64,000 nt of DNA from Ranitomeya imitator (lineage: Eukaryota): assembly GCF_032444005.1 (NCBI RefSeq), contig NC_091286.1, forward strand, positions 708,474,001 to 708,538,000, read 5' to 3'. The position numbers and the translations under genes were made by a program. Under the pieces are notes generated by a model. It saw only the letters and a list, made by a program, of their open reading frames with translations. It had not been told where the DNA came from and ran no database searches. Below are positions 915 to 54,599 of the stretch, piece by piece; position 1 is the first letter of the stretch, and the number at the start of each line of letters is the position of its first letter.

Positions 915-3900
915 ACCTGTAACCATTTTGAATGGTTTTAGTTGAATGAAGCAGGTCAGATATGACTTTGGTCAGATGCGACATCATTTGAAGTGACATC
1001 TTTAAAGTGTAACATCAGAAATATACCTGAGTGGTAACCCATGGTATATTCTCCTTCATACTGTCATGTCCCGATCCATCTGCTTTCATCCACAGGTACG
1101 TCTGAACGGTCTCTTAATCCAGAATACACACTGCACCCCAGAATCCCATGGACTCCTGTTCCTCTGTTCTAACTGGTACGCTGCTGCTTTTTCCCTAACT
1201 TTAATTCCATGTATCATACTTAAAATTTACTGATTGCTGATTGATATATCCACGTTCCTCACACCTTCACACCTGGAGCAGGTCAGATATGACACCTTTA
1301 AAGTGTAACATCAGAAATATACCAGAAATAGTCCAAAAATCGGTCAAAAGGTAAGAATAATCACTGTCTTCTAATTTTACTTGCCTTCTTTTCTTCCCCT
1401 GCTCTTTAACCATGGTCACATTTGCCCTCACCGTTTTTGCTCCACTAATCCTCACTCTCCTTCGCTAACCCCAAACCCCTGCACCCTCGAACCAAATAAC
1501 TATCTCCCCCTCTCTCCTACCCCCCACCTTGCTTCATCCGCAGACCTGCTCCTTAACCTCAGACCTCTCCTGCTAAAACATGCTATAAGCCGACTGCTCT
1601 CCTTCACCCACCTGCTTTCCCTTTCTCTGCTCCTTCCCACTGCTGGCGACAAATCCCCCAATCCTGACCCCGCCTCACACATCCCACTAATCCTCACCCC
1701 TATCCTTTCCACACTAAGAGAAACTACCGCAACCCCTCACACTTAAAACCTGTGCCACTGACCCCCCACCCCCTTGCTTCCTCTCTCTGGGGCACTTTGG
1801 AATGTCTGCTCCGTCTGCAACAAGCTCCACGTGATCCACGATCTCTTTACTTCCCGCAACCTTTCTTTCCTGGCCCTCACTGAGACCTGGCTGACACCTC
1901 CTGACACGGCCTCCCCTGCTGCACTGAGTTACAGTGGCCTCCACTTTACCCACACTCCTCGCTCTGGCAACAAACACGGCGGAGGAGTGGGTTTCCTTCT
2001 CTCTAAAAACTGCTCCTTCAACCCTATCCAACCCCAACCCTCCTGTATCCTCCCTTCTTTCGAGGTTCACTCTGTCCATATCTACTCTCCCTCTAATCTC
2101 CAAATGGCTGTCATATACTGTCCGCCGGGCTCAGCCACTGCCTTCATTGAACAATTCTCCACCTGGCTTCTTCACTTCCTCTCTGCTGACATCCCCATCA
2201 TCATCATCATCATCATCATCGGTGACTTTAATATCCCTACTGACACCCACCAGCCAGCAGCCTCCAAACTACTGGCCCTTACTTCATCCTTTGGACTTAC
2301 TCAGTGGTCCTCCACAGCTACCACACAGATGGACATACACTAGACCTCATCTTAACCCGCCTCTGTTCCTTATCTACTCTCACAACCTCTCCCTTCCCCC
2401 TATCTGACCACCACCTACTCACCTTCTCATCCTTGTCTTCCTCACCCGCCCCGCACGTCCAGCCACTACCACATCCTCGCAGAAACCTCACACACTTAGA
2501 CATTCACAGACTCTCATCTTCCTCTGTCCTCCATAGCTTCACTCCACGACATGGACAGCGCCACCGCTTTCTATAACTTCACCCTCACATTAGCCATAGA
2601 CTCTCATGCATGGCAAAGTGCGACAAATCAGTAGGCAACCCAGGCATAACAATCTCACCAAAAAACTCCGACAAGCATCCAGAGTCGCGGAGCAGCGTTG
2701 GAAGAAAACACGCCTGCCAGACGACTTCACTGCTTTCAAACAAACTACACTTGCCTTCAAACTAGTCCTCACTTATGCTAAACAGATCTATTTCAGTAAC
2801 CTTGTATCTTCACTATCCTACAACCCAAAACAACTGTTCTCCGCCCACCACTGCCACCTCCAATTTCTCTCATCTCTTCCGAGGACTTTGTCACCTATTT
2901 CAAAAACCAGATCGACCAAACAAGGCAAACCTTTACTGTTCCACCACAACCACTCCATGTACCAGACCTCTGCCCTTCCCTAATAACCTCCCTCTCCAAC
3001 ATCACTGAAGAAAAGCTTACTCGCCTCTTTTCCAAATCACACCTCACCACCTGTGCATTTGACCCCATCCCTTCCCACCTACTCCCCTAACTCACTAACA
3101 CGCTCATTCCAGCCCTAACCCATCTCTTCAACCTATCCCTATCTTCTGGTACCTTCCCCTCTGCCTTCAAACATGCCACATCACACCCATCCTCAAAAAA
3201 CAAACCTTGACCCAACCGCTATGCCCAGCTATCGCCCCATATCACTGCTCCCATTTGCTTCAAAACTCCTTGAGCAGCATGTCCATGCTCAACTTTCCTC
3301 CCACCTCTCATCTAACTCTCTCCTTGACAACCTCCAATCTGGCTTCCGCCCCCACCACTCCACCGAAACTGCCCTGACCAAACGTACTAATGACTTACTC
3401 ACAGCCAAAGCTGACAGACAGTTCTCCATCCTCCTCCTTCTTGATCTGTCCTCTGCTTTCGACACAGTCGACCACTGCCTACTGCTACAGATTATTTCTT
3501 CCCTTGGAATCAAAGACCTTGCTCTGTCCTGGATTGCCTCATACATTTCGGACCGCACATTTAGTGTTTCCCACTCCCACACCACCTCCTCATCCCACCC
3601 TCTCTCTGTTGGAGTCCCTCAAGGCTCTGTCCAGGGCCCCTACTTTTTTTCATCTATACCCTTGGCCTAGGACAACTCAAAATCCCACGGCTTCCAGTAC
3701 CATCTGTATACGGACGACACTCAAATCTACCTCTCTGGCCCAGATGTCACCGCTCTGCTGTCCAGAATCCCAGAGTGTCTATCAGCCATAACCTCCTTCT
3801 TCAAGTCTCGCTTCCTAAAACTCAATGTAGAAAAACCTGAACTCATCATCTTTCCTCCCTACCCGACCTATCATTTATGGTAAACGGTATCACGCTAACT

Positions 3901-5272
3901 CCCGCACCTGAAATCCGCTGCCTCGGAGTAAGTCTCGACTCTGCCCTGTCTTTCAAACTGCACGTCCAAACTCTTGCCACCTCCTGTCGCCTCCAACTCA
4001 AAAATATTGCCAGAATCCATCCGTTCCTCAGCCCCCAATCAACTAAAACTCTTGTGCATGCCATCATCATCTCCCGCCTCGATTACTCCTCTGTGGCCTC
4101 CCCGCTAACTCTCTTGCACCACTCCTGTCTGTCCTCAACTCTGCTGCCCGGCTAATCCGCCTCTCTCCTCGCTACTCCCCTGCTTCTCCCCTCTGCAAAT
4201 CCCTCCACTGGCTCCCCATTCCCCAACGAATCCAGTTCAAACTACTAACACTGACCTACAAAGCCATCCACAACCTGCCCCTCCCTATATCTCTGAACTA
4301 ATCTCCCAATATCTTCCCTCGCGTAATCTCCGATCCTCCCAAAACCTCCTACTCTCCTCCACACTTATTCGTTCCTCACACAACCGCCTCCAAGATTTCT
4401 CCCGAATATCCCCCATCCTCTGGAATTCCATGCCTCAACACATCCGATTATTCACCACCCTCGGATCCTTCAGACGGAACCTGAAAACCCATCTCTTCAG
4501 GAAAGCCTACAGCCTGCAATAACCATTCTGCCGCCTCACCACCACCCGAGCAGCCGCCTCACCACCATCCGAGCTGCCGCCTCACCACCATCCGAGCTGC
4601 CGCCTCACCACCATCCGAGCTGCCGCCTCACCACCATCCGAGCTGCCGCCTCACCACCATCCGAGCTGCCGCCTCACCACCATCCGAGCTGCCGCCTCAC
4701 CACCATCCGAGCTGCCGCCTCACCACCATCCGAGCTGCCGCCTCACCACCATCCGAGCTGCTGCCGCCTCACCATCACCAGAGCTGCCGCCTCACCACCA
4801 TCCGAGCTGCCGCCTCACCACCATCCGAGCTGCCGCCTCACCACCATCCGAGCTGCCGCCTCACCACCATCCGAGCAGCCGCCTCACCATCACCAGAGCT
4901 GCCGCCTCACCACCATCCGAGCTGCTGCCTCACCACCAACCGAGCAGCTGCCTCACCACCATCCGAGCTGCTGCCTCACCACCATCCGAGCTGCCGCCTC
5001 ACCACCATCCGAGCTGCCGCCTCACCACCATCCGAGCTGCCGCCTCACCACCATCCGAGCTGCCGCCTCACCATCACCAGAGCTGCCACACTCCCAACCT
5101 TCTGTCTCTTCCCCATTATCCCGTAGAATGTAAGTCCGCAAGGACAGGATCCTCTCCCCTCTGTACCAGTCTGTCATTGTAAATTTGTTTACTGTAAATA
5201 ATATCTATAACTCTATGTAACCTCTTTCTCATGTACAGCACCATGGAATTAATGGTGCTATATAAATAATAA
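915..5272 (+). mobile_element. L2 (CR1/L2 clade) LINE, near full length, frameshifted ORF2 (APE endonuclease + RT)
   Basis: APE motifs (LWNVCSVCNK, LALTETWL, GGGVG, GDFN, SDHH), RT motifs ([43 protein letters not shown]), (AAT)n tail. The host minisatellite stops at TAATAT 909-914 and resumes at TAATAT 5273-5278 (candidate TSD). Confidence 0.92.
4520..5090 (+). repeat. 23-bp minisatellite (ccgagctgccgcctcaccaccat)n inside the L2 3' UTR
   Basis: About 24 directly visible units. Confidence 0.95.
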
Positions 5273-7430: not shown

Positions 7431-9001
7431 CTAACAGCTAAATCTAATGGTCACTACTCCATGCTAATTCTCTTGGATCTCTCTGCAGCATTCGACACTG
7501 TGGATCATCAGCTCCTCCTCACTATGCTCCGCTCCATCGGCCTCAAGGACACCGTTCTCTCCTGGTTCTCCTCCTATCTCTCTGACCGATCCTTCACTGT
7601 ATGTTTTGCTGGTTCCTCCTCCTCTCACCTTCCCCTTACTGTTGGGGTTCCTCAAGGATCAGTCCTAGGCCCCCTACTCTTCTCGTTGTATACTGCCCCT
7701 ATTGGACAAACAATCAGTAGATTTGGTTTCCAGTACCATCTCTATGCTGACGACACCCAATTATACACTTCTGCTCCCGATATCACACCGACCTTTTTAG
7801 AAAACACCAGTGATTGTCTTACCGCTGTCTCTAACATCATGTTCTCCCTCTATCTGAAACTAAACCTGTCAAAAACTGAACTCCTCGTGTTCTCTCCCTC
7901 TACTAACCTACCTTTGCCTGACATTGCCATCTCCGTGTGCGGTTCCACCATTACTCCAAAGCAACATGCCCGCTGCCTTGGGGTCATCCTTGATTCTGAC
8001 CTTTCATTCACCCCCTACATCCGATCACTGGCTCGCTCTTCTTACCTGCATCTCAAAAACATTTCTAGAATTCGCCCTTTTCTTAATTTCGACTCTGCAA
8101 AAACTCTGACTGTTTCACTTATTCATTCTCGTCTGGACTATTGTAACTCTCTACTAATCGGTCTCCCTCTTGCAAAACTCTCCCCGCTCCAATCTGTCCT
8201 GAATGCTGCAGCCAGGATCATATTCCTCACCAACCGTTACACCGATGCCTCTACCCTGTGCCAGTCATTACACTGGCTACCCATCCACTCCAGAATCCAG
8301 TACAAAACTACTACCCTCATCCACAAAGCACTCCATGGCTCAGCACCACCCTACATCTCCTCCCTGGTATCAGTCTACCACCCTACCCGTGCCCTCCGCT
8401 CCGCTAATGACCTCAGGTTAGCATCCTCAATAATCAGAACCTCCCACTCCCGTCTCCAAGACTTTACACGTGCTGCGCCGATTCTTTGGAATGCACTACC
8501 TAGGTTAATACGATTAATCCCCAATCCCCACAGTTTTAAGCGTGCCCTAAAAACTCATTTGTTCAGACTGGCCTACCGCCTCAATGCATTAACCTAACGA
8601 TCCCTGTGTGGCCTATTTATAATAAAAAAAAAAAAAAAAAAAAAAAAGGTTCCTCGCATCATGTTCTCATACACTTTATGCAGTATTAGCCCTCTGTGTC
8701 TGTACTGCTACATACTTAGGCTGATAACTGGTTCATGCAGCTTTACATGAACACCTGAGCCTTACACTATAGCTGGTCCGAATAACTAAAGCAATTGTTA
8801 CCATCCACCTCTCGTGTCTCCCCTTTTCCCCATAGTTTGTAAGCTTGCGAGCAGGGCCCTCATTCCTCCTGGTATCTGTTTTGAACTGTATTTCTGTTAT
8901 GCTGTAATGTCTATTGTCTGTACAAGTCCCCTCTATAATTTGTAAAGCGCTGCGGAATATGTTGGCGCTATATAAATAAAATTATTATTATTATTATTAT
9001 T
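7431..9001 (+). mobile_element. 5'-truncated L2 LINE with an intact RT C-terminal frame (7461-8597)
   Basis: [26 protein letters not shown]; (ATT)n tail; 7-bp TSD ATAGCTA at 7424-7430 and 9002-9008. Confidence 0.95.
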
Positions 9002-18065: not shown

Positions 18066-18469
18066 TGATGGGTTTTACATTTCTTTTTTCTTCAGTCACT
18101 TTGTATTTTGTTCGTTGATAAAAAAAAACTATTAACTTTTCGTTGTCTGAAGCTTCGGACTCTGGAGAATTTATTCCACACGACTAACAGTTTTTCACAG
18201 CACTGTAAAAATACATTAAAAACTAAAGTTAAAAAAAAAAGTTCTACATAAAATCACATGACGGGAAAGGAAAGATTCAAGTGTAAAATCTGTTAAGATA
18301 CCAAATATGTGATTTGTAAACAATGATCGTAAACAAAATCCAAAGCTCAACTGAAAACCAAAGTAAAATAAGAAATCACAGACGATCCCATGTGTGAATT
18401 CTGTCATGACAGCTCATGCTGTGTCTGTATGTATCCCGACATCCCATAATGCAATCAGTGTATGAGCGC

Positions 18470-20150
18470 ACCCCTTGCCTGGCCACATCACACGCCTGGC
18501 CACTCATCCTCCCCCCGCCGGCCGCCTCCCTTGCCTGGCCACTCATCCTCCCCCCGCCGGCCACCTCCCTTGCCTGGCCACTCATCCTCCCCCCCGCCGG
18601 CCACCTCCCTTGCCTGGCCACTCATCCTCCCCACGCCGGCCGCCTCCCTTGCCTGGCCACTCATCCTCCCCCCGCCGGCCGCCTCCCTTGCCTGGCCATT
18701 CATCCTCCCCCCGCCGGCCGCCTCCCTTGCCTGGCCACTCATCCTCCCCCTGCCGGCCGCCTCCCTTGCCTGGCCACTCATCCTCCCCCTGCCCGGATGC
18801 CTCCCTTGCCTGGCCACTCATTCTCCCCCTGCCAGGCCACCTCCCTTGCCTGGCCACTCATCCTCCCCCTGCCCGGCCGCCTCCCTTGCCTGGCCACTCA
18901 TCCTCCCCCTGCCCAGCCACTCAATCTCCCTCTGACGGCCGCCTCCCTTGCCTGGCCACTCATCCTCCCCCTGCCCGCCGCCTCCCTTGCCTGGCCACTC
19001 ATCCTCCCCCTGCCGGCAGCCTCCCTTGCCTGGCCACTCATCCTCCCCCTGCCCAGCCACCTCCCTTGCCTGGCCACTCATCCTCCCCCTGCCGGCCGCC
19101 TCCCTTGCCTGGCCACTCATCCTCCCCCTGCCCGGCCGCCTCCCTTGCCTGGCCACTCATCCTCCCCCTGCCCAGCCACCTCCCTTGCCTGGCCACTCAT
19201 CCTCCCCCTGCCCAGCCACCTCCCTTGCCTGGCCACTCAATCTCCCTCTGACGGCCGCCTCCCTTGCCTGGCCACTCATCCTCCCCCTGCCGGCCGCCTC
19301 CCTTGCCTGGTCACTCATCCTCCCCCTGCCGGCCGCCTCCCTTGCCTGGCCACTCATCCTCCCCCTGCCCAGCCACCTCCCTTGCCTGGCCACTCATCCT
19401 CCCCCTGCCCAGCCACCTCCCTTGCCTGGCCACTCATCCTCCCCCTGCCCAGCCACCTCCCTTGCCTGGCCACTCAATCTCCCCCTGCCCAGCCACCTCC
19501 CTTGCCTGGCCACTCAATCTCCCTCTGACGGCCGCCTCCCTTGCCTGGCCACTCATCCTCCCCCTGCCGGCCGCCTCCCTTGCCTGGCCACTCATCCTCC
19601 CCCTGCCGGCCGCCTCCCTTGCCTGGCCACTCATCCTCCCCCTGCCCAGCCACCTCCCTTGCCTGGCCACTCATCCTCCCCCTGCCCAGCCACCTCCCTT
19701 GCCTGGCCACTCAATCTCCCTCTGACGGCCGCCTCCCTTGCCTGGCCACTCATCCTCCCCCTGCCGGCCGCCTCCCTTGCCTGGCCACTCATCCTCCCCC
19801 TGCCGGCCGCCTCCCTTGCCTGGCCACTCATCCTCCCCCTGCCCAGCCACCTCCCTTGCCTGGCCACTCATCCTCCCCCTGCCCAGCCACCTCCCTTGCC
19901 TGGCCACTCAATCTCCCTCTGACGGCCGCCTCCCTTGCCTGGCCACTCATCCTCCCCCTGCCCGCCGCTTCCCTTACCTGGCTACTCATCCTCCCCCTGC
20001 CGGCTGCCTCCCTTGCCTGGCCACTCATCCTCCCCCTGCCGGCCGCACCCCTGCCTGGCCACTCATCCTCCCCCTGCCGGCCGCACCCCTGCCTGGCCAA
20101 TCATCCTCCCCCTGCCGGCCGCACCCCTGCCTGGCCAATCATCCTCCCCC
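18470..20150. repeat. 39/40-bp GC-rich minisatellite (cctcccttgcctggccactcatcctccccctgccggccg)n
   Basis: More than 40 visible units, starting about 20 bp into the intron after coding exon 4. Confidence 0.97.
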
Positions 20151-20170
20151 TCACTACACTTATATCCCAC

Positions 20171-20438
20171 CTCTCCTGGAACAGAGCCGCTCTTCCTGTT
20201 GAAGCAGAGGTCGTTGTCAGACTCCTCCTCGCTCAGGCCCACATCCTCCACTTCTTCTTCCTGCTCCAGGATGTCATCTGACACTACAAAATCCATGTCA
20301 TCGTCAGAGTCATCTCGCTTTCTCTTCCTGCGTTGTTTCTTCCCAGTGTCCTCCGGCAGCTTCTTCTCTAATTTTGGGGGAGAGGTCAGTCCACATTCCT
20401 CCCATTCATCAACTATATCTTGAAAATGCTTCATGGCC
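20171..20438 (-). CDS. gtf3c2: gtf3c2 coding exon 4 (AMKHFQDIVDEWEECG...acidic region...SVPGE)
   Basis: Acceptor ttctcctgtag|; the phase 2 join gives T-A-M-K-H-F-Q (human ALLYLQELAEE); acidic tract. Donor GAG|GTGGGA is inferred from the phase 0 match to the next exon. Confidence 0.85.
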
Positions 20439-20682: not shown

Positions 20683-20917
20683 GTTTTGGCTGCGCGTCTC
20701 CTCGGCCGACCACTTGGTGTTAGTTCCACTTCCACGTTCTCCGAGTCGCTCTGCCTGTTCTCCACAAAGGTTTGCGCCTCCAGCTCCTGAGCCGCCTTTA
20801 TCAACAGTAACTCGGCTTTGGACTTGCGGCCTCGCTTCTTTGGGACCTTCACGGGTGTTTGCTGGAGGAGAGAGTCTTCATCAGCTAAAGATTTAGCCAC
20901 AAAGTCAGAAGAAGGCT
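20683..20917 (-). CDS. gtf3c2: gtf3c2 coding exon 3 (EPSSDF...PKKRGRKSKAELLL...TPSGRPRRRAAKT)
   Basis: Matches human GTF3C2 as recalled (MPKKRGRKSKAELLLLK...ETPSGERPRRRAAQV). Branch point ctaat, acceptor tatttcag|, donor AC|GTGAGT. Confidence 0.93.
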
Positions 20918-20944
20918 CTGAAATATAAAATACAGTACATCATC

Positions 20945-23900
20945 ATTAGTAGAAAAAGGAAAGCGGGGAAAGGAAGAGGAAAGAAGGAGGGAAAAATAAG
21001 GGAGAAAAGGAAGTGGAAGGAGAAAGGGAGAGGAGAAAAGGGAAAGGGAGAGGAAGGAGGGAGAGGAAGATGAAGGAGGGAGAGGAAGATGAAGATGAAG
21101 GAGGGAGTGGAAGGGAGGGCATGGAGAGGAGGAAGAGGAAGGAATGGGAAAAGGAAAGGAGGAATAGGAAAAATGGATGGGCAAAACAGGTGGGAGAGGA
21201 GGAAGAGGAAGGATGGAGGGGAAAGGCAAAAAAGAAAAAAGAGCAAGAGGAAGGACAGAAATGAAAAAGGGAAGTGATGGAAGAAGAAGGGAAGGGAAAA
21301 GGAAGAAAAAGCAGCCAAAAAAGGGAGGCTAGGGAGCGGAGGAAGAGGAAAGACAGAAGGAAAAGGGAGAGGAGGGGAAAAAAGAGAGGAGGGAAGGAAA
21401 ATAGATAGTAGGGAAGGAAAAGAGAGAGGAGGGAAGGGAAAGGAAGTAAATTAAGAAAAGAGGAAGAGAATAAGTGTAAGAATGAAATGAAAAGGGAGAG
21501 AGGGATGGAAAAATAGGAGGAAGAGAAAGGAGGCAAAGAAAAGGAAAGGGAGGAAGCGTACTAAGAGGGAGGAGGAGGAGGAAGTAGAAAAGGAGAGGGA
21601 GAGGAGGAAGAGGAAGGATGGAGGATAACGGCAGAGAAGGGAGAGAATGAATGAGGGAAGGGGGAGGACAAAGGAGGGATAGGAAAGGAAGAGGAGAGAA
21701 AGGAAAAGGAAAAGAAATGCAGAGGAGGAAGCGGTAGGAGAATGGAAAGGAGGGGAGGAAGACAAAGGAGGGAGGGGAAAGGGAGAGGTGAGAGAGAAAG
21801 GAGGGAAGGAAAAGGAAGAGGAGTTAGAGTAAGGAGGGGGAAGGGAAAAGAAGGAAGAGGAAGGATGCTGGGGAAGGAGAAGATGAATGAGGGAGGGGAA
21901 AATGAGAAGAGGAAGACGAGGAAGGTGAAAGAAGGAAGGAAGGAAAAAGGGAGAGGACGAAAAAGGAAAAATGAGATGAGGAAGGAGGAGAGGAAATTGA
22001 GAAGGAGGGAAGGAAAGGAGGAAGAGGAAGTATGGAGGGGAAAAAGGAGGGATAGGAGAGGAAGTTTGGAGGGTAAGGTGGGAGGAGAAAGTGAGAGGCA
22101 GAAGAGTAAGCAGAGGAGAAAGGGACAGGCGGAAGAGTAAGGATGTACGGGAAAAGGAGAGGAAGAAGATGAAGGAGAAAGGGACAGGAAAATTAGGAAG
22201 GAAGGAAAGGGGAGAGGAAGGATAAAGGGAAAAGTGAGAGGAAGAAGAGTAGGGACAGAGGGGAAAGGGAGGGAAATGAGAGTAGGAAGAGGAAGGACAG
22301 AGGGAAAAGGAAATAGGAGGCAGGGAGAGGAGGAAGGAGACTAAATGGAGAGAAGGAAGGAGGTAGGGGAAAGGGAGAAAAGGAAGAGAAAGAAGGGGAA
22401 AAAAAGAAGGAGGAAGGTAAAAGAGGAAGGAGGGAGGGAGAAGAAAGAAGAAGGAGGATGGAAGGGAAGAGAGGGAGAGGAGGATAGCAGGAGAGGCAGG
22501 AGGAGGGAGAGGCAGGAGGAGGGAGGGGAAAGGTAAAGAAAAAAGGAAGGCGGCAGGGAGGAAAAAGGGGAATGAGGAAAGGGAAAGGGAGAGAAAGAAG
22601 GAGGTAAGGGAAAAGGAGAGAAGAGGAAGGAAAAAAGCAGATAAGCAAGAGGAAGGGAAAAGGGAGAGGAGGAAGAGGGAGGGAGGGGAAGAGAAAGGAA
22701 GAGGGGGAGGAGGAAGGGATAAGAGAAAAACATAGAAGAGAGAAAAGAGAAGGAAGTAGGGGAAAAAATAGGAGAAAGGGGAAAGAGGAGGAAGATGAAA
22801 GGGAGAGGGGGCAGGAGAAAGAGGGAGGAAAAGGGATAGTAAAGAGGGAGGTAAAGGGAGAAGAGGAAGGAGAGAGAAGAGAAGAAGAGGGAGAATACAC
22901 AGAGAAGGGAGAGGAAAGAACTAGAGTTGGAAGATGAATGGGGAGGAGATGGAAGAAGAAAAAGAAAAGGATGAAGAAAAAGCAGAAAAGAAAAAAAGAG
23001 GGAGAGACAGAAAAGGAAGGGGTGAAAGAGGAAGACAACTGAAATAGGAGGAAGGGGAGAAAACTGAAGCGGAGGAAGAGGGAGTCAGGGGAAGGGGAAA
23101 GAGGAGGAAGGGGAAATGAAGAGGAGAAAAAGGGAGCATCTAGAGAGGAGGAATTGGAAAGAAATAGAAAGGGAAGAGGAAAAGTGGAAGAAAAAGGGTG
23201 AAGAGGAAGCGGAAAAGTAAGTGGAAGGAGGAAGGGGGAGGGGAAAGGGGTAGGAGAAAGAAGAAGGCAGTGGGGGAAGAAAAGGGTGGGAAAAGAAAAA
23301 GGAAGAAGGGAAATGGGTGAAAGGAAGATGGTGGGGAAAAGGTAAAGGATGAAAAGGAAGGAAAGGGAAAAGGGAGAGGAGGTAGAGGAAGGGGAGAGTG
23401 GAATAGAAGAAAAAAAAGAGGAAGGAGTGAGGGGAAAGGGAAATAAGTAGGAGTAAGGAAGAAAGGGAGACAAGGAAAATAAGTTAGGGGAAGATGAAAA
23501 AGAGGAGGAAGAGGAAAGAGGGAGAATACAGAGGAATGATGGGGAGGAGGATGAGGAAAAATGGAGAGGAGGAAGGATGGAGAGGAGGAAGGATGGATAG
23601 GAGGAAGAAGAGGAAGGATGGCGAGGAGGAAGGATGGCGAAGAGGAAGGATGGAGAGGAGGAAGAGGAAGGATGGAGAGGAGGAAGAGGAAGGATGGCGA
23701 GGAGGAAGAGGAAGGATGGAGGAGGATGAGGAAGGATGGAGAGGAGGAAGAGGTAGGATGGAAGGAAAAGGGGAAGAGGAAGCAGAAAAGTAAGAGGATG
23801 GAGGAAGGGAAAGGAAGAGGAAGAAGAGGAGAAAGAGGAAGGAGGTGAGGAAGAAAAGAAGAAGGAGGTAGAGGAAAGGGAGAGGAGTAAATAGGTAGGG

Positions 23901-24400
23901 ATAAAGGAGAGGATGAAGAGGAAGGAGGGATGAAAAGGGAGAGGAGTAAAAATAAGGGTGAAGAGAAAGACAGGAAAAAGTAGGAGAAAAGAAGGAAAGG
24001 GGAAAGCATAAAAAAGGGACAGAAGAGGAAGAAGGGAGGACTAAGGAGGGGAGAGAAGAAGAGGAAGGAGGGAAGGGTAGAGTAGAGGAAGGAGGGATGG
24101 GATGTGGAGGAAGAAACGGGAAAGGGAGGGATGTGAAAAAGGAGAAAAGGATGGATGGAGGGGACAGGGACATGAGAAAGCAATGATGGAGGGGAAGGAA
24201 GGGGAAGAGGAGGAAAAGGAAGGAAGGAGGGCTAAGAGAGAGGTAGGAGAAAGCGGAATGGAGAGGATGGTTGGACAGAGAAGGGAGTGGAAGAAGAGTA
24301 AGGTGGGAGGAAGAAGAGGGGATTAGAAAAGGAAGAAGGACCATTGACTTAAAATAAGAGGGTAATCGGGAAGCATGAACAAGCATAAACAGAAGGGAGA
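20945..24400. repeat. 3.5-kb polypurine (GGA/GAA-derived) tract filling the intron between coding exons 2 and 3
   Basis: Almost exclusively G/A on the plus strand. Confidence 0.95.
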
Positions 24401-24476
24401 AGGTCTGAAATGACAGATGGAGTAGAAATTAGACAGCCTGGGAGAAGTACTGCAGTGTGAGAGAACAGTCACATAC

Positions 24477-24884
24477 CAGTAGTAGCCTGCTGGACGTCCT
24501 GTGATGCCGGGATAGTGGACACAGACTTTTTCTGGATGCTGTCATTGTGCACAGTGATAGAGTTTACTGGAGACTGAATGACACCAAGACCTTTCCTGTC
24601 AGGAGGAGGTATGAGAGGGGCTGCAGACAACTGAGTCATCTTCATTTTAGTTTTAGACTTACAGCCTTTTCTCTTAGGCACCTTCACAGGTCTTTGACTG
24701 AGCAGGGGAGAATTCTGTAATACATTGACCGGACAAGGAGTTGAGGGCTCCTCTGCATCAGTCATAGCAGAGCGACTCTGTTCTAGAGTCCGTGAACACT
24801 TGGTGTTGGAATTCGGAGTTTGTGGGACACTAGCGGAGTCTTCAGCAACCAAACATCTATCGCTGCCATCCATAAGAGTAGGAC
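24477..24884 (-). CDS. gtf3c2: gtf3c2 coding exon 2 (GPTLMDGSD...PVKVPKRKGCKSK...SQDVQQATT), symmetric 408-nt phase 1-1 exon
   Basis: Acceptor tatgtgcag| and donor G|GTATGT; open frame; contains a second copy of the PVKVPKKRGRKSK motif. Confidence 0.75.
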
Positions 24885-25189
24885 CTGCACATACATGACA
24901 ACACACCAAATTACTGAAGAGAAGACGAGGGATGGGAACAAAGAAGAGCAAAAAAGTGTGAGAGAACGAGGGCTCAAGAGAGAGAGGAGAAGAAAAAAGA
25001 AAACGAGGGCTGGGGACAGAGAGGGGCAGAAAGAAAAAGAATGAGGGAAGGGTATAGATAAGCAAAAAAAGTGAGAAAAAGAGGGATGGGGACAAAGGTG
25101 CAGAAAAAAGAGAAAACGAAGGCTGGGGACAGAGGAGCAGAGAGACAGAACAATGGCTGTGGACAGAGGTGCATAAAGAGAGAGAATGA

Positions 25190-27790
25190 GGGCTCGGAAC
25201 AGAGAGGAGCAGAGAGAGAACAAGGGCTCGGGACAGAGAAGCAGAGAGAACAAGGGCTCGGGACAGAGAGAAGCAGAGAGAACAAGGCTCGGGACAGAGG
25301 AGCAGAGAGAACAAGGGCGCGGGACAGAGAGAAGCAGAGAGAACAAGGGCTCGGGACTGAGAGGAGCAGAGAGAACAAGGGCCCGGGACAGAGAGAAGCA
25401 GAGAGAACAAGGGCTCGGGACAGAGAGAAGCAGAGAGAACAAGGGCTCGGGACAGAGAGGAGCAGAGAGAATAAGGGCCCGGGACAGAGAGGAGCAGAGA
25501 GAACAAGGGCCCGGGACGGAGAAGCAGAGAGAACAAGGGCTCGGGACAGAGAGGAGAAGAGAGAACAAGGGCTCGGGACAGAGAGGAGCAGAGAGAACAA
25601 GGGCCCGGGACAGAGAGAAGCAGAGAGAACAAGGCTCGGGACAGAGAGGAGCAGAGAGAACAAGGGCTCGGGACAGAGAAGCAGAGAGAACAAGGGCTCG
25701 GGACAGAGAAGCAGAGAGAACAAGGGCTCGGGACAGAGAAGCAGAGAGAACAAGGGCTCGGGACAGAGAGGAGCAGAGAGAACAAGGGCTCGGGACAGAG
25801 AGGAGAGGAGAGAACAAGGGCTCGGGACAGAGAGGAGAGGAGAGAACAAGGGCTCAGGACAGAGAGAAGCAGAGAGAACAAGGGCCCGAGACGGAGAAGC
25901 AGAGAGAACAAGGGCTCGGGACAGAGAGGAGAAGAGAGAACAAGGGCTCGGGACAGAGAGGAGAAGAGAGAACAAGGGCTCGGGACAGAGAGAAGCAGAG
26001 AGAACAAGAACTCGGGACAGAGAGGAGCAGAGAGAACAAGGGTTCGGGAAAGAGGAGCAGAGAGAACAAGGGCTCGGGAAAGAGAGGAGCAGAGAGAGAA
26101 CAAGGGATCGGGACAGAGAGAAGCAGAGAGATCAAGGGCTCGGGACAGAGAGAAGCAGAGAGAACAAGGGCTCGGAACAGAGAGGAGCAGAGAGAGAATA
26201 AGGGCTCGGGACAGAGAGGAGCAGAGAGAACAAGGGCCCGGGACAGAGAGGAGCAGACAGAACAAGGGCACGGGACAAAGAGGAGCAGAGAGAACAAAAG
26301 CCCGGGACAGAGAGGAGCAGACAGAACAAGGGCTCGGAACAGAGAGGAGCAGAGAGAAAACAAGGGCTCGGACCAGAAAAAAGCAGAGAGAACAAGGGCC
26401 CGGGGCAGAGAGGAGCAGAGAGAGAACAAGGGCCCGGGACAGAGAGGAGCAGAGAGAGAACAAGGGCTCGGCCCAGAGAGAAGCAGAGAGAACAAAGGCT
26501 CGGGACAGAGAGGAGCAGAGAGAACGAGGGCTCGGACCAGAGAGAAGCAGAGAGAACAAGGGCTCGGGACAGAGGAGCAGAGAGAGAACAAGGGCTCGGG
26601 ACAGAGAGGAGCAGAGAGAGAACAAGGGCTCGGGACAGAGAGAACAAGGGCTCGGGACAGAGAGAACAAGGGCTCGGGACAGAGAGAACAAGGGCTTGGG
26701 ACAGAGAGAACAAGGGCTCGGGACAGAGGAGCAGAGAGAGAACAAGGGCTCGGGACAGAGGAGCAGAGAGAGAACAAGGGCTCGGGACAGAGGAGCAGAG
26801 AGAACAAGGGCTCGGGACAGAGAGGAGCAGAGAGAGAACAAGGGCTCGGGACAGAGAGGAGCAGAGAGAACAAGGGCTCGGGACAGAGGAGCAGAGAGAG
26901 AACAAGGGCTCGGGACAGAGGAGCAGAGAGAAAACAAGGGCTCGGGACAGAGGAGCAGAGAGAAAACAAGGGCTCGGGACAGAGAGGAGCAGAAAGAACA
27001 AGGGCTCGGGACAGAGAGGAGCAGAGAGAGAACAAGGGCTCGGGATAGAGGAGCAGAGAGAACAAAGGCTCAGGACAGAGGAGCAGAGAGAGAACAAGGG
27101 CTCAGGACAGAGAGGAGCAGAGAGAACAAGGGCTTGGGACAGAGAGGAGCAGAGAGAGAACAAGGGCTCGGGACAGAGGAGCAGAGATAACAAGGGCTCG
27201 GGACAGAGAGGAGCAGACCGAGAACAAGGGCTCGGGACAGAGGAGCAGAGAGATAACAAGGGCTCGGGACAGAGAGGAGCAGAGAGAGAACAAGGGCTCG
27301 GGACAGAGAGGAGCAGAACGAACAAGGGCTCGGGACAGAGAGGAGCACAGAGAACAAGGGCTCGGGACAGAGAGAAGCACAGAGAACAAGGGCTCGGGAC
27401 AGAGAGGAGCAGAGAGAGAACAAGGGCTCGGGAATGAGAGAAGCAGAGAGAACAAGGGCTCGGGACAGAGAGGAACAGAGCGAAAACAAGGGCTCGGGAC
27501 AGAGGAGCAGAGCGAGAACAAGGGCTCGGGACAGAGAGGAGCAGAAAGAACAAGGGCTCGGGACAGAGAGGAGCAGAGCGAGAATAAGGGCTCGGGACAG
27601 AGGAGCAGAGCGAGAACAAGGGCTCGGGACAGAGGAGCAGAGCGAGAACAAGGGCTCGGGACAGAGAGAAGCAGAGAGAACAAGTGCTCGGGACAGAGAG
27701 GAGCAGAGAGAACGAGGGCTCGGGACAGAGAGGAGCAGAGAGAACGAGGGCTCGGGACAGAGCGAGAACAAGGGCTTGGGACAGAGAAGA
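25190..27790. repeat. ~32-36-bp purine-rich minisatellite (gagaacaagggctcgggacagagaggagcaga)n
   Basis: Directly visible tandem units with purine-rich flanks at 24900-25190 and 27790-28000. Confidence 0.97.
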
Positions 27791-28068
27791 GCAGAAAGAG
27801 AGAATGAGGGCTTGGACAAAGAAGTCTGTGAGAAAGAGGAGAGTGATGTGAGAAAGAGGAGAGTGAAGATGACAGATTGGATGAAAAAGGGTAGAGAAGA
27901 CAAGGGTCTAAAACAAAAAGGCAAGAGGATGGGGCCTCAGAAGTGGGGTATAGAAGACATGGGTGTGAAATGAAGAAGAGGAGAAAGAGATGATGTGTGG
28001 GACAATGAAGCCAAGGACCACGGTCTAAACAGGGAGGTGTGGAGCTGATGGACCTCTAAGCCACATAC

Positions 28069-28357
28069 CATTAGTGTCCAAAACGATGTCCTGAGAAAGC
28101 GGGAGAGAGGAGAGCGGCTTCTTCTGGGGGTTGTCACTGGGGAGAGCTGCAGCGTTTACAGGGGAATGGTATACACCAAGACTCTTCTTGCCAGAAGGTA
28201 TGAGGGGAGCAACAGACTCCTGCATAGTGACCCCGGTGGTAGGAGCGCTGACACCTAGGGGCAAGACAGCGGGGGAGGGTAGATTCTCGTCTTCTCGGCT
28301 TATTATCATGACCTCTGCACAGAGTGTATCACAGTCCTCAAGTTCTGATCCGGCCAT
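28069..28357 (-). CDS. gtf3c2: gtf3c2 coding exon 1 (MAGSELEDCD...SQDIVLDTN); exon probably starts at the acceptor at 28408
   Basis: ATG at 28357, acceptor ctctctcttgctgcag| at 28408, donor G|GTATGT at 28068. The 289 nt give phase 1, matching the next exon. No direct homology recognised; assigned by frame continuity with the downstream exons. Confidence 0.7.
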
Positions 28358-28524: not shown

Positions 28525-28980
28525 CAAGCGCATGTATATATGCACACAGGTATATACTATATACAGGAGGAGATGGCATACAGGTATATACTATATTCAG
28601 GAGAGATGACACAGGTATATACTATATACAGGGGAGATGACACAGGTATATATTATATACAGGGGAGATGACACACATATATACTATATACAGGAGGAGA
28701 TGGCACAGGTATATATTATATACAGGGGAGATGACACACATATATACTATATACAGGANNNNNNNNNNNNNNNNNNNNNNNNNNNNNNNNNNNNNNNNNN
28801 NNNNNNNNNNNNNNNNNNNNNNNNNNNNNNNNNNNNNNNNNNNNNNNNNNNNNNNNNNNNNNNNNNNNNNNNNNNNNNNNNNNNNNATCCTGTGTAATAT
28901 AGGAGAGGCCTCCATTCTGTGTAATGCTGGAGAGGTCTTCCATCCTGTGTAATATAGGAGACGCCTCCATCCTGTGTAAT
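28525..28980. repeat. ~31-bp minisatellite on the left of the gap and a different short repeat on the right
   Basis: tatactatatacaggggagatgacacagg units; tcctgtgtaatataggaga units after the gap. Confidence 0.85.
28759..28886. other. Assembly gap (128 N)
   Basis: Run of N. Confidence 1.
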
Positions 28981-29122
28981 AATCTAGTTGCCCACTTTTG
29001 AACTGAGCCCAAAATTGGATCCCATGCTCTAGATGTGGCCTCACCAATGATTTGCAAAGAGGTAACAATACGTTGGGATCATGGGATTTTCTCTCTCTTT
29101 ATTCACCCTAAAAATAGAATTC

Positions 29123-48619: not shown

Positions 48620-49622
48620 ATTACCGTACAGGGGTCCCCCACAGCCTCACACACACACACACACACACGGTACCGTACAGGGGTCCCCCACAGCCTAACA
48701 CACAGTACCGTACAGGGGTCCCCCGCAGCCTCACACACACACACGGTACCGTACAGGGGTCCCCCGCAGCCTCACACACACACGGTACCGTACAGGGGTC
48801 CCCCGCAGCCTCACACACACACACGGTACCGTACAGGGGTCCCCCACAGCCTAACACACAGTACCGTACAGGGGTCCCCCGCAGCCTCACACACACACAC
48901 GGTACCGTACAGGGGTCCCCCACAGCCTAACACACAGTACCGTACAGGGGTCCCCCGCAGCCTCACACACACACACGGTACCGTACAGGGGTCCCCCGCA
49001 GCCTCACACACACACACGGTACCGTACAGGGGTCCCCCGCAGCCTCACACACACACACGGTACCGTACAGGGGTCCCCCGCAGCCTCACACACGGTACCG
49101 TACAGTGGTCCCCCGCAGCCTCACATACACACACGGTACCGTACAGTGGTCCCCCGCAGCCTCACACACACACACGGTACCGTACAGGGGTCCCCCACAG
49201 CCTAACACACAGTACCGTACAGGGGTCCCCCGCAGCCACACACACACACGGTACCATACAGGGGTCCCCCGCAGCCTCACACACACAGTACCGTACAGGG
49301 GTCCCCCGCAGCCTCACACACACGGTATCATACAGGTGTCCCCCCCAGCAGCCTCACACACACACACACGGTACCATACAGGTGTCCCCCGCAGCCTTAC
49401 ACACACGGTACCATACAGGGGTCCCCCGCAGCCTCACACACACGGTACCATACAGGTGTCCCCCGCAGCCTTACACACACGGTACCATACAGGGGTTCCC
49501 CACAGCCTCACACACACACACGGTACCATACAGGTGTCCCCCGCAGCCTCACACACACACACTGTACCATACAGGTGTCCCCCGCAGCCTCTCACACGGT
49601 ACCATACAGGTGTCTTCCGCAG

Positions 49623-49672
<50 letters not shown>

Positions 49673-51152
49673 CCATACAGGTGTCCCCGGCAGCCTCACA
49701 CACACGGTACCATACAGGTGTCCCCCGCAGCCTCAAACACACACACGGAACCATACAGGTGTCCCCCGCAGCCTCACACACGGTACCATACAGGGGTCCC
49801 CCGCAGCCTCACACACACACGGTACTATACAGGTGTCCCCCGCAGCCTCACACACACACGGTACCATACAGGTGTCCCCCGCAGCCTCACACACGGTACC
49901 ATACAGGTGTCCCCCGCAGCCAGCCACACACACACACGGAACCATACAGGTGTCCCCCGCAGCCTCACACACGGTACCATACAGGTGTCCCCCGCAGCCA
50001 CACACACACACACGGAACCATACAGGGGTCCCCCGCAGCCTCACACACACACGGTACCATACAGGTGTCCCCCGCAGCCTCACACACACACGGAACCATA
50101 CAGGTGTCCCCCGCAGACACACACACACACACACACACACACGGAACCATACAGGGGTCCCCCGCAGCCTCACACACACACGGTACCATACAGGTGTCCC
50201 CCGCAGCCTCACACACGGAACCATACAGGTGTCCCCCGCAGCCTCACACACACACGGAACCATACAGGTGTCCCCCGCAGCCTCACACACGGAACCATAC
50301 AGGTGTCCCCCGCAGCCTCACACACGGAACCATACAGGTGTCCCCCGCAGCCTCACACACGGTACCATACAGGGGTCCCCCGCAGCCTCACACACACACG
50401 GTAACATACAGGTGTCCCTGCAGCCTCACACACGGAACCATACAGGTGTCCCCCGCAGCCTCACACACGGAACCATACAGGTGTCCCCCGCAGCCTCACA
50501 CACACACTGTACCATACAGGTGTCCCCCGCAGCCTCACACACGGAACCATACAGGGGTCCCCCGCAGCCTCACACACACACACACGGAACCATACAGGTG
50601 TCCCCCGCAGCCTCACACACGGTACCATACAGGTGTCCCCCGCAGCCTCACACACGGTACCATACAGGGGTCCCCCGCAGCCTCACACACACACACACGG
50701 TACCATACAGGTGTCCCCTGCAGCCTCACACACACGGTACCATACAGGTGTCCCCCGCAGCCTCAAACACACACACGGAACCATACAGGTGTCCCCCGCA
50801 GCCTCACACACGGTACCATACAGGGGTCCCCCGCAGCCTCACACACACACGGTACTATACAGGTGTCCCCCGCAGCCTCACACACACACGGTACCATACA
50901 GGTGTCCCCCGCAGCCTCACACACGGTACCATACAGGTGTCCCCCGCAGCCAGCCACACACACACACACACACGGAACCATACAGGTGTCCCCCGCAGCC
51001 TCACACACGGTACCATACAGGTGTCCCCCGCAGCCACACACACACACACGGAACCATACAGGGGTCCCCCGCAGCCTCACACACACACGGTACCATACAG
51101 GTGTCCCCCGCAGCCTCACACACACACGGAACCATACAGGTGTCCCCCGCAG

Positions 51153-51184
<32 letters not shown>

Positions 51185-52451
51185 CCATACAGGGGTCCCC
51201 CGCAGCCTCACACACACACGGTACCATACAGGTGTCCCCCGCAGCCTCACACACGGAACCATACAGGTGTCCCCCGCAGCCTCACACACACACGGAACCA
51301 TACAGGTGTCCCCCGCAGCCTCACACACGGAACCATACAGGTGTCCCCCGCAGCCTCACACACGGAACCATACAGGTGTCCCCCGCAGCCTCACACACGG
51401 TACCATACAGGGGTCCCCCGCAGCCTCACACACACACGGTAACATACAGGTGTCCCTGCAGCCTCACACACGGAACCATACAGGTGTCCCCCGCAGCCTC
51501 ACACACGGAACCATACAGGTGTCCCCCGCAGCCTCACACACGGAACCATACAGGTGTCCCCCGCAGCCTCACACACACACTGTACCATACAGGTGTCCCC
51601 CGCAGCCTCACACACGGTACCATACAGGTGTCCCCCGCAGCCTCACACACGGTACCATACAGGTGTCCCCCGCAGCCTCACACACACACAGTACCATACA
51701 GGTGTCCCCCGCAGCCTCAAACACACACACGGAACCATACAGGTGTCCCCCGCAGCCTCACACACGGTACCATACAGGTGTCCCCCGCAGCCTCACACAC
51801 GGTACCATACAGGTGTCCCCCGCAGCCTCACACACACACAGTACCATACAGGTGTCCCCCGCAGCCTCAAACACACACACGGAACCATACAGGTGTCCCC
51901 CGCAGCCTCACACACGGTACCATACAGATGTCCCCCACAGCCTCACACACGGTACCATACAGGGGTCCCCCGCAGCCTCACACACACACACACGGTACCA
52001 TACAGGTGTCCCCTGCAGCCTCACACACACGGTACCATACAGGTGTCCCCCGCAGCCTCAAACACACACACGGAACCATACAGGTGTCCCCCGCAGCCTC
52101 ACACACGGTACCATACAGGGGTCCCCCGCAGCCTCACACACACACGGTACTATACAGGTGTCCCCCGCAGCCTCACACACACACGGTACCATACAGGTGT
52201 CCCCCGCAGCCTCACACACGGTACCATACAGGTGTCCCCCGCAGCCAGCCACACACACACACACACACACACGGAACCATACAGGTGTCCCCCGCAGCCT
52301 CACACACGGTACCATACAGGTGTCCCCCGCAGCCACACACACACACACGGAACCATACAGGGGTCCCCCGCAGCCTCACACACACACGGTACCATACAGG
52401 TGTCCCCCGCAGCCTCACACACACACGGAACCATACAGGTGTCCCCCGCAG

Positions 52452-52483
<32 letters not shown>

Positions 52484-54563: not shown

Positions 54564-54599
<36 letters not shown>

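Follow-up and report, generated by a model that had tools for sequence, protein, structure and literature searches.

How can a gene gain a coding exon that works from the moment it arises, and what becomes of such an exon afterwards? This question is raised by the second coding exon of gtf3c2 in the frog Ranitomeya imitator (Dendrobatidae in the NCBI taxonomy), the gene that encodes TFIIIC110, the WD40 subunit of TFIIIC. Its 5′ end lies on the minus strand of the DNA studied here, a stretch of 64,000 nucleotides (nt) of contig NC_091286.1 (assembly GCF_032444005.1) that we call the window; positions refer to it unless another locus is named. A first reading of the letters, made by a model without database searches (the sequence-only reading), had proposed that a tandem duplication breaking two exons produced a chimeric exon. 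We consider it highly probable, taking the explanation as a whole, that exon 2 was made from its two neighbour exons by a tandem segmental duplication in the stem lineage of the hyloid frogs, and this is the best explanation of the data presented below.

The exons concerned are all on the minus strand. Coding exon 1 (28069-28357), which corresponds to an ancestral exon A, starts with the ATG at 28357 and ends in phase 1 with the donor G/GTATGT (here and below a slash within a sequence marks a splice site or a join). It is followed by intron 1 (24885-28068), which consists mostly of a minisatellite, and by coding exon 2, the chimeric exon (24477-24884; acceptor tgtgcag/GT, donor G/GTATGT). Exon 2 is symmetric, as had been read from the letters alone, with 408 nt and phase 1-1. 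After the low-complexity intron 2 (20918-24476) comes coding exon 3 (20683-20917; acceptor tttcag/AG, donor AC/GTGAGT), which corresponds to a shortened ancestral exon B and contains the invariant KKRGRKSKAELL (basic core KKRGRKSK at 20840-20817), a predicted helix, the hexanucleotide CAGGAG and the residues RPRRRAAK. The compositional bias previously remarked on in both flanking introns was also recovered, C+T amounting to 80% in intron 1 and 91% in intron 2 on the gene strand; the two sequences are unalignable. Translated, exons 1, 2 and 3 each recur letter for letter in RefSeq XP_069584712.1 and XP_069584713.1, the isoforms X1 and X2 of R. imitator GTF3C2, and exon 3 matches residues 145-202 of human GTF3C2 (Protein Data Bank, PDB, chain 8cli_C) with an expectation value (E) of 1.6e-6 over the block from KKRGRKSKAELL to RPRRRAA; the window therefore carries R. 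imitator gtf3c2. Exon 2 thus belongs to an already annotated protein and is no novelty of the R. imitator genome.

The 3′ part of exon 2 resembles the 3′ part of exon 1. This A3′-derived part (24477-24633) runs from QLSAAPLIPPP to the donor G/GTATGTG, and its source-type copy in exon 1, the A3′ segment (28069-28222), from QESVAPLI to the same donor. BLASTP finds 26 of 58 residues identical between the two exons (E 8e-12), and the 26 of 53 counted by hand in the sequence-only reading were reproduced as a 52-column alignment plus a shared split glycine codon. The alignment score of 113 was reached by none of 2000 residue shuffles (32.1 ± 5.8). At the DNA level the two copies agree at 110 of 162 nt, the match extending 10 nt into the donor (GGTATGTG), and the likeness ends about 10 nt inside the introns. 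The A3′-derived part of exon 2 holds the best-conserved copy of a short motif, PPxRKGLGVIQSPVN (24562-24609), of which the A3′ segment of exon 1 has a weaker copy, PSGKKSLGVYHSPVN (28154-28201). The other neighbour is matched through the basic core: 13 of 21 residues are identical between exons 2 and 3 (BLASTP, E 7e-7), as are 34 of 45 nt, and the score of 68 again exceeds all 2000 shuffles (29.2 ± 5.3). The change from GRK to GCK that had been pointed out between the two basic copies is indeed present, exon 2 reading KRKGCKSK (24675-24652) against KKRGRKSK in exon 3.

If only the window is considered, exon 2 shows no significant likeness to exon 3 in its first 44 residues (the score is attained by 549 of 2000 shuffles), so that the homology of the exon 2 start to exon B rests on a multi-species alignment. 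There, the match of exon 2 to the ancestral exon B begins with the first residues, GPTLMDGSD facing GPSLLDGSN, and continues via QTPTSN and a segment reading L, Q or E, N, S or G, P to the basic motif. Thus the B5′-derived part of exon 2 (24634-24884) can be aligned over its full length with the single long exon B found in Mixophyes and Lithobates; it comprises the ancestral exon B acceptor, GPTLMDGSD to QTPNSNTK, LQNSP, KRKGCKSK and then the junction. Hyloid exon 3 has the same ends of B and one gap of about 47 residues, located between ED and LQTPVKVPKK and common to every hyloid aligned, Rhinoderma included. In Eleutherodactylus coqui the acceptors and first codons of the chimeric exon and of exon 3 are visibly alike, and across the species compared the two introns carry a similar catgt[ag]tgtg..gcag near the acceptor. 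Because exon 2 matches B from the very first residues, its acceptor is the duplicated ancestral one. In this respect the sequence-only reading was mistaken: it had aligned the middle of exon 2 (EPST) with the start of exon 3 (EPSS) and taken a gcag just upstream as a relic acceptor. The string is present upstream of EEPST at 24759-24745, but EPSS of exon 3 aligns with the first residues of exon 2, GPTL, and both the gcag and the EPST match are coincidental.

The unduplicated state is found in Mixophyes fleayi, which the NCBI taxonomy places in Myobatrachoidea, outside Hyloidea. Its genomic DNA (locus L005, free of Ns) has exon A at 1001-1288 with the donor CTGG/GTAAGT, then an intron of 206 nt that is non-repetitive and leaves no room for a third exon, and then one long exon B, which starts at about 1495, begins with GPSLLDGS and runs to RPRRRAAKT. 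Hyloid exon 3 maps onto this single exon, and so does the 5′ part of hyloid exon 2. The layout A, B5′/A3′, B, which had been proposed to come from duplicating the segment between mid-exon A and mid-exon B, is thus directly supported, since Mixophyes shows exon A, an intron and a long B in place of the exon structures of hyloids.

We propose that the duplication took place in the hyloid stem lineage, after its split from Myobatrachoidea. The copied stretch would have begun midway in exon A, directly behind MQE, taken in the A-B intron and ended midway in exon B, at AAQE, and the new exon would have received the acceptor and 5′ part of B, fused in frame to the 3′ part and donor of A. As both parent exons are in phase 1, a new exon of 408 nt and phase 1-1 could be spliced at once. 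The join was probably made at CAGGAG, which is found at the presumed breakpoint in both parents (within 28225-28214 in exon 1 and 20792-20781 in exon 3), as read in present-day, not ancestral, sequences, and which would suit a join by microhomology. In less diverged species the junction reads AAQE, then L or S, then V, G or M before APL, the parental contexts being MQES-VAPL in exon 1 and AAQEL-EAQ in exon 3; examples are KAAQEL/MAPLIHPPGRKGLG in E. coqui and QAQES/GVPL in Engystomops. The distal copy of B, present-day exon 3, later lost about 47 codons. Note also that, contrary to the suggestion of the sequence-only reading, skipping of exon 2 would not bring back the ancestral form: it gives exon A joined to a shortened B, namely exon 3, which already lacks the 47 or so codons.

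The chimeric exon is confined to hyloids among the sequences examined. A search of 1.84 billion representative proteins with the peptide of exon 2 gave only four matches, all of them hyloid GTF3C2; a word search with the N-terminus of E. coqui brought further species with the chimeric unit, and a second one with residues 30-225 of Leptodactylus added none. The unit aligns column by column in R. imitator, R. variabilis, Dendrobates, Phyllobates, Anomaloglossus, E. coqui (Eleutherodactylidae in the NCBI taxonomy), Leptodactylus, Engystomops, Hyla and Dendropsophus. We take Dendrobates and Phyllobates to be Dendrobatidae and Anomaloglossus to be Aromobatidae; Leptodactylus and Engystomops are presumably Leptodactylidae, and Hyla and Dendropsophus Hylidae. 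The unit is thereby found in at least ten species of at least five hyloid families, with the reading frame and both splice sites retained. In genomic DNA it is a single exon of phase 1-1 in E. coqui (L002), Leptodactylus (L004) and Engystomops (L003), and its flanks are conserved in these three (acceptor catgtatgtgcag/G, donor G/GTATGTGAC). It is absent from the protein models of Mixophyes, Lithobates, Xenopus, Rhinophrynus, Spea and Pelodytes, from those of caecilians, salamanders, reptiles and marsupials, from the human chain and from a transcript-derived ranid-like protein (P0020); these outgroups were mostly seen as protein models, Mixophyes also at the level of genomic DNA. Dating by cross-species alignment, the course recommended in the sequence-only reading, thus gives an exon that is hyloid-wide (at least five families) and missing from Xenopus and ranid models, and the idea that all tetrapod orthologues have the same repeat fails on every non-hyloid tetrapod model seen. 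The same reading knew of no such repeat in human GTF3C2, and rightly so, as the exon 1 and exon 2 peptides find no match in the human PDB chain at E up to 10. For the same reason, and because the older upstream hook of amphibians is a different motif, of GRP type, a human TFIIIC110 with a similar two-motif layout, considered as a sign of an ancient repeat, was ruled out.

Transcripts of R. imitator contain exon 2. There are 20 public sequencing runs in which it occurs, and the contigs of four runs from four studies were placed on 24331-24920 (exon 2 with short flanks only). From each run came a single contig, 1.5-2.5 kb long, whose match to the window spans exactly 24477-24885, with zero mismatches and with zero depth in both intron flanks, and the overhangs correspond to 20888-20917 (the start of exon 3) and 28070-28099 (the end of exon 1). 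Since the contig sets (65-145 Mb) are far smaller than the genome and the molecules are spliced, the contigs are transcripts. Exon 2 is spliced in frame between exons 1 and 3 in R. imitator mRNA: four of four contigs join exon 1 to exon 2 and exon 2 to exon 3 exactly, and the notion that the exon is never spliced in can be set aside. In Dendrobates tinctorius, RefSeq isoform X2 equals X1 minus 136 residues, a predicted exact skip of exon 2.

Several points weigh against a single duplication in the hyloid stem followed by functional retention. Introns 1 and 2 give only low-complexity matches in blastn and have no alignable homology, and the duplicated intron is thus not directly visible. Bufonidae and several other hyloid families contributed no sequence to the matches of these searches. 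Rhinoderma, which is a hyloid, has exon 1 and a short-type exon 3 only, separated by a 1.5-kb intron without Ns in which the chimeric exon was not found; we infer a secondary loss, because its exon 3 carries the post-duplication deletion, the alternative being assembly collapse between repeat arrays. A tree of the A3′ copies places the exon 1 copies and the chimeric copies of dendrobatoids in separate clades, each with 100/99 support, on an unresolved backbone, and grouping all chimeric copies in one clade is mildly disfavoured by an approximately unbiased (AU) test on 53 columns (p 0.048), a result that fits gene conversion or weak signal. In the literature consulted, neither this duplication nor a function for the N-terminus of TFIIIC110 and its motifs was found. 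To these must be added that the microhomology given above is read from present-day sequences, and the limits stated below with the substitution ratios and the structure prediction.

What, then, has kept the exon? Exon 2 would supply 136 extra residues of a disordered N-terminal tail, carrying a short linear motif and a weakened basic patch, and subfunctionalisation at the level of motifs may keep it under purifying selection. For the chimeric exon, pairwise comparison of four species by the Nei-Gojobori method gives a ratio of nonsynonymous to synonymous substitution rates (omega) of 0.49-0.59 in each of the six pairs (Fisher p 0.0015-0.02), hence the figure of about 0.5 used here, and in the same pairs it is 0.17-0.43 for exon 3 and 0.27-0.76 for exon 1, the pairs being non-independent and the synonymous divergence (dS) high. 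The 15-residue motif PPGRKGLGVIQSPVN has a mean pairwise identity of 0.81 in chimeric copies against 0.41 in exon 1 copies, and the basic motif KVPKKRGRKSKAELL of 0.48 in chimeric copies against 0.83 in exon 3. The copies have decayed in complementary ways, PPGRKGLGVIQSPVN being best kept in exon 2, and KKRGRKSKAELL together with the helix in exon 3. The basic motif of exon 2 is degenerate in most species (variants KRKGCKSK, AKQSRKSK and RKQGRKRV). Judging from these patterns, exon 2 appears to be a moderately constrained extension of a disordered tail that is retained for its better copy of a short linear motif, while its basic patch seems to be decaying, with KRKGCKSK in R. imitator.

The structural side of this proposal comes from an AlphaFold2 model with a mean pLDDT (predicted local distance difference test) of 48, built on an alignment of 10 rows, for which a low value is weak evidence of disorder. 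The model has no secondary structure before residue 266 and predicts helices at 266-282 (directly after the basic motif of exon 3) and at 309-325 only; the duplication cut the first of them, and none is predicted at the matching place in exon 2. The sequence-only reading had seen in exon 2 a second, degenerate copy of an AT-hook or nuclear localisation signal-like motif. The degenerate basic copy is real, and the AT-hook is not borne out, since there is no R-G-R-P core and a Pfam scan, which found only the C-terminal WD40 region, left AT_hook unmatched at E up to 1. Like a canonical AT-hook, the element is a short basic patch of glycine and arginine in the predicted disordered tail of a DNA-bound factor; differently from it, neither KKRGRKSK (exon 3) nor KRKGCKSK (exon 2) has GRP, and the likeness is a lead only. 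A GRP-type AT-hook does occur upstream of KKRGRKSK in Spea (RRRGRPPKHK), Pelodytes and caecilians (Rhinatrema KKRGRPRK), and in degenerate version in Xenopus laevis; at this position Mixophyes, Lithobates and hyloid exon 2 read QTPTSN (P0019, P0018, P0024, P0033 and P0017 were compared with P0060, P0021 and window 24884-24760). In the amphibian alignment this older hook is a motif different from the basic one, and of GRP type. It looks as if the older GRP hook was lost in neobatrachians, with a second basic patch coming back later in hyloids through the duplication; a connection between the loss and the regain would be speculation.

Retention for a motif has a competitor that accepts the same origin and takes the exon to be a neutral passenger, inert filler in a disordered tail that stays because it is in frame and has strong splice sites. 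Its omega above that of exon 3, the degeneration of its basic motif in most species, the predicted lack of structure, its absence from Rhinoderma and the skipped isoform predicted in D. tinctorius would all suit such filler. Inert filler is harder to reconcile with an omega significantly below 1 in six of six pairs, with a frame and two splice sites retained in at least ten species of five families, with inclusion in four of four R. imitator transcript contigs and with a motif identity of 0.81 against 0.41. The copy of PPGRKGLGVIQSPVN in exon 1 is deleted in Hyla, which, together with the higher conservation of the chimeric copies, is as expected if exon 2 carries the working copy. We regard the passenger explanation as unlikely on balance, though of all the alternatives it survives best.

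A more elaborate possibility, which we hold to be rather improbable, is that the disordered tail is a recurrent hot spot of exon-breaking duplication in amphibians, seeded by pyrimidine-rich intronic minisatellites and by the paralogous pieces of exons, that the hyloid duplication was fixed by the regain of a basic patch after the loss of the GRP-type hook in neobatrachians and then locked in by subfunctionalisation of motifs, and that exon 2 now carries the sole fully functional PPGRKGLGVIQSPVN as a docking or phosphorylation motif required by TFIIIC. The hyloid exon itself, a second chimeric exon in Engystomops, two to five exon 3 units in Anomaloglossus, the loss in Rhinoderma and the expansions in Discoglossus and salamanders would be its examples. 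Copy number did change again after the duplication, in Engystomops, Anomaloglossus and Rhinoderma, and this belongs to the main explanation. The second chimeric exon of Engystomops consists of a short, exon 3-type 5′ part and an A3′ part with tiny introns on both sides, exactly what unequal crossing-over between two basic-motif regions would give. In Anomaloglossus baeobatrachus, four isoforms (P0061, P0006, P0062 and P0001, with 1260, 1205, 1205 and 1095 residues) differ by multiples of a 55-residue unit (containing PPPLDPVDKSLASED and, further on, KRGR followed by K or R and SKAELLLIKAAQELEAPTHVENN); to judge from the proteins, there are apparently two to five tandem copies of the front of exon 3, used as cassette exons. 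The introns flanking the chimeric exon contain pyrimidine-rich minisatellites in every hyloid checked: 32 bp in about 83 copies in intron 1 of R. imitator (25109-27762), 36 bp in 40 copies in Rhinoderma (L001 10388-11782), 34 bp in 149 copies in Engystomops (L003 1349-6433), 36 bp in two copies in E. coqui (L002 653-732) and, in intron 2, 22 bp in 47 copies in Leptodactylus (L004 2945-3979). Runs of N are present in two of these loci (L002 1357-4856; L001 31137-31336). The 206-nt intron of Mixophyes has no minisatellite. When the units were aligned, shuffles did as well in 4 of 2000 cases for Ranitomeya and Rhinoderma, 5 of 2000 for Ranitomeya and E. coqui, and 26 of 2000 for Engystomops and Rhinoderma, and the remaining pairs were not better than shuffles. 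These data point to an old minisatellite in the introns of hyloids, perhaps a driver of the copy-number changes, and the later changes probably proceeded via unequal recombination either between paralogous pieces or between the flanking intronic minisatellites.

Large expansions of the GTF3C2 N-terminus were also observed elsewhere: in Discoglossus (P0014) the whole block from the hook to RPRR is repeated, and Pleurodeles (P0031) and Ambystoma (P0047) have long runs of short acidic repeats. The three proteins (1269-1512 residues) represent independent events.

Could similar exon-breaking duplications have occurred independently in several hyloid families, at a locus prone to them? We find this very unlikely. 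The locus does re-duplicate (the second chimeric exon of Engystomops, the 55-residue exon 3 units of Anomaloglossus), unrelated N-terminal expansions are seen in Discoglossus and salamanders, and the tree does not recover the chimeric copies as one clade, the AU test being borderline. Moreover, some residues are common to both copies within a lineage, for example QKK in dendrobatoids, where other lineages have QKR, and SDGPQKRALSSLP, found in each of the two copies of Dendropsophus. This last pattern suggests some gene conversion, which is a simpler account of it than repeated origin. Against recurrence stand the position of the junction, identical in all species, the combination in all of them of the long B5′ form in the chimeric exon with the deletion of about 47 codons in exon 3, the same phase throughout and the conservation of intron sequence next to the acceptor and the donor of the chimeric exon. 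As the copy tree is unresolved, the case for a single origin rests on this architecture, that is, on the junction, the long and short B pattern, the phase and the flanks.

The age of the exon agrees with such an origin. The A3′ paralogues differ by a dS of 0.71 within R. imitator and of 0.43 within E. coqui, compared with 0.45-0.95 for orthologues taken from different hyloid families. With frog timetrees as background, the event would lie before the hyloid radiation at about the Cretaceous-Paleogene boundary and after the split from Myobatrachoidea. It is well supported that the chimeric exon is old and lineage-wide in hyloids, older and wider than the reading of a single genome suggests. Exceedingly unlikely, finally, is a three-exon layout ancestral to anurans or tetrapods that was lost outside Hyloidea or missed by gene models: such models can omit the exon (those of Rhinoderma and D. 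tinctorius X2 do) and outgroups were mostly seen as proteins, but Mixophyes DNA has just 206 nt between A and the long B, P0020 and the pipid, pelobatoid, caecilian, salamander, reptile, marsupial and human proteins pass from A-type sequence to one such basic motif, the paralogue dS is not above the inter-family dS, and the hyloid A3′ copies are nearer to each other than to exon A of Mixophyes or Lithobates.

A stem-hyloid duplication that built exon 2 from pieces of exons A and B can be compared with several known systems. Exon duplication within genes is said to have been surveyed by Kondrashov and Koonin in 2001 and by Letunic, Copley and Bork in 2002. As in classic tandem exon duplication, the copy is head-to-tail and within one gene, and a symmetric in-frame exon lengthens the protein with repeated modules. 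The hyloid case differs in that the breakpoints lie inside two exons, so that a downstream 5′ part is fused to an upstream 3′ part and no whole exon is copied, and in that the product is included in all four contigs and is not a mutually exclusive alternative. The fate of the copies recalls duplication-degeneration-complementation, reportedly described by Force and co-workers in 1999: exon 2 keeps the SPVN-type motif and exon 3 the basic motif and the helix, and both copies would be preserved because each keeps a different sub-element intact. Here, the sub-elements are candidate short motifs in two exons of one gene, in contrast to regulatory modules of two genes.

Human GTF3C2 (PDB 8cli, 8clj and 8cll, chain C) is the orthologue and has the exon 3 block at residues 145-202, but no B5′/A3′ repeat. 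The structure of human TFIIIC places its WD40 domain in the τB core and in contact with DNA on the downstream side of the B-box; the N-terminal tail of TFIIIC110 is not described in that paper (Seifert-Davila et al., 2023; PMC11811891).

The remainder of gtf3c2 in the window, also on the minus strand, includes coding exon 4 (20147-20438; its acceptor precedes 20438 and its 3′ end is approximate, from tblastn) and coding exons 5 and 6 (about 6098-5850 and 5461-5321). The WD40-encoding part is mostly beyond the window; in P0057, a database protein identical to that of the window, WD40 (PF00400) scores 28.4 bits at residues 722-759 (cut-off 27), and several propeller families match residues 611-769, all below their Pfam cut-offs. 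A 38-bp tandem repeat (CCCCTGCCTGGCCAATCATCCTCCCCCTGCCGGCCGCA) at 18400-20151 fills the intron just 3′ of exon 4 and yields many overlapping proline-rich open reading frames (ORFs) on both strands. On the plus strand within a gtf3c2 intron, ORFs at 1774-4155 and 7461-8597 resemble, by eye, the endonuclease and reverse transcriptase of long interspersed nuclear elements, the one at 7461-8597 being intact (378 residues). Upstream of the gene, an assembly gap (N run 28759-28886) is flanked by 31/63-bp and 27-bp tandem repeats at 28544-28981; the start codon is only about 200-600 bp away from these repeats and the gap, so that assembly of the promoter and 5′ untranslated region is incomplete. Further upstream there is a 5.6-kb tandem array (49007-54577; unit 35-39 bp, about 145 copies, CACACACACACGGTACCATACAGGTGTCCCCCGCAGCCT) that is open in several frames and gives spurious ORFs of up to 1423 residues.

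The finding leaves the knowledge of TFIIIC unchanged: RefSeq already has the exon, and proteins are well known to grow longer by internal tandem duplication. It is a clean new case of a familiar kind of event, in a gene already annotated, and the function proposed for the exon is a candidate only. Its value lies in being an unusually legible natural case, in which breakpoints inside two exons immediately yielded a working exon, thanks to matching phases and the inheritance of both splice sites. The outgroup preserves the state before the event, and ten species record the aftermath: deletion, complementary decay of motifs, re-duplication and loss. For the biology of RNA polymerase III, two conserved short motifs in the N-terminal tail of TFIIIC110 are thereby flagged as functional candidates.

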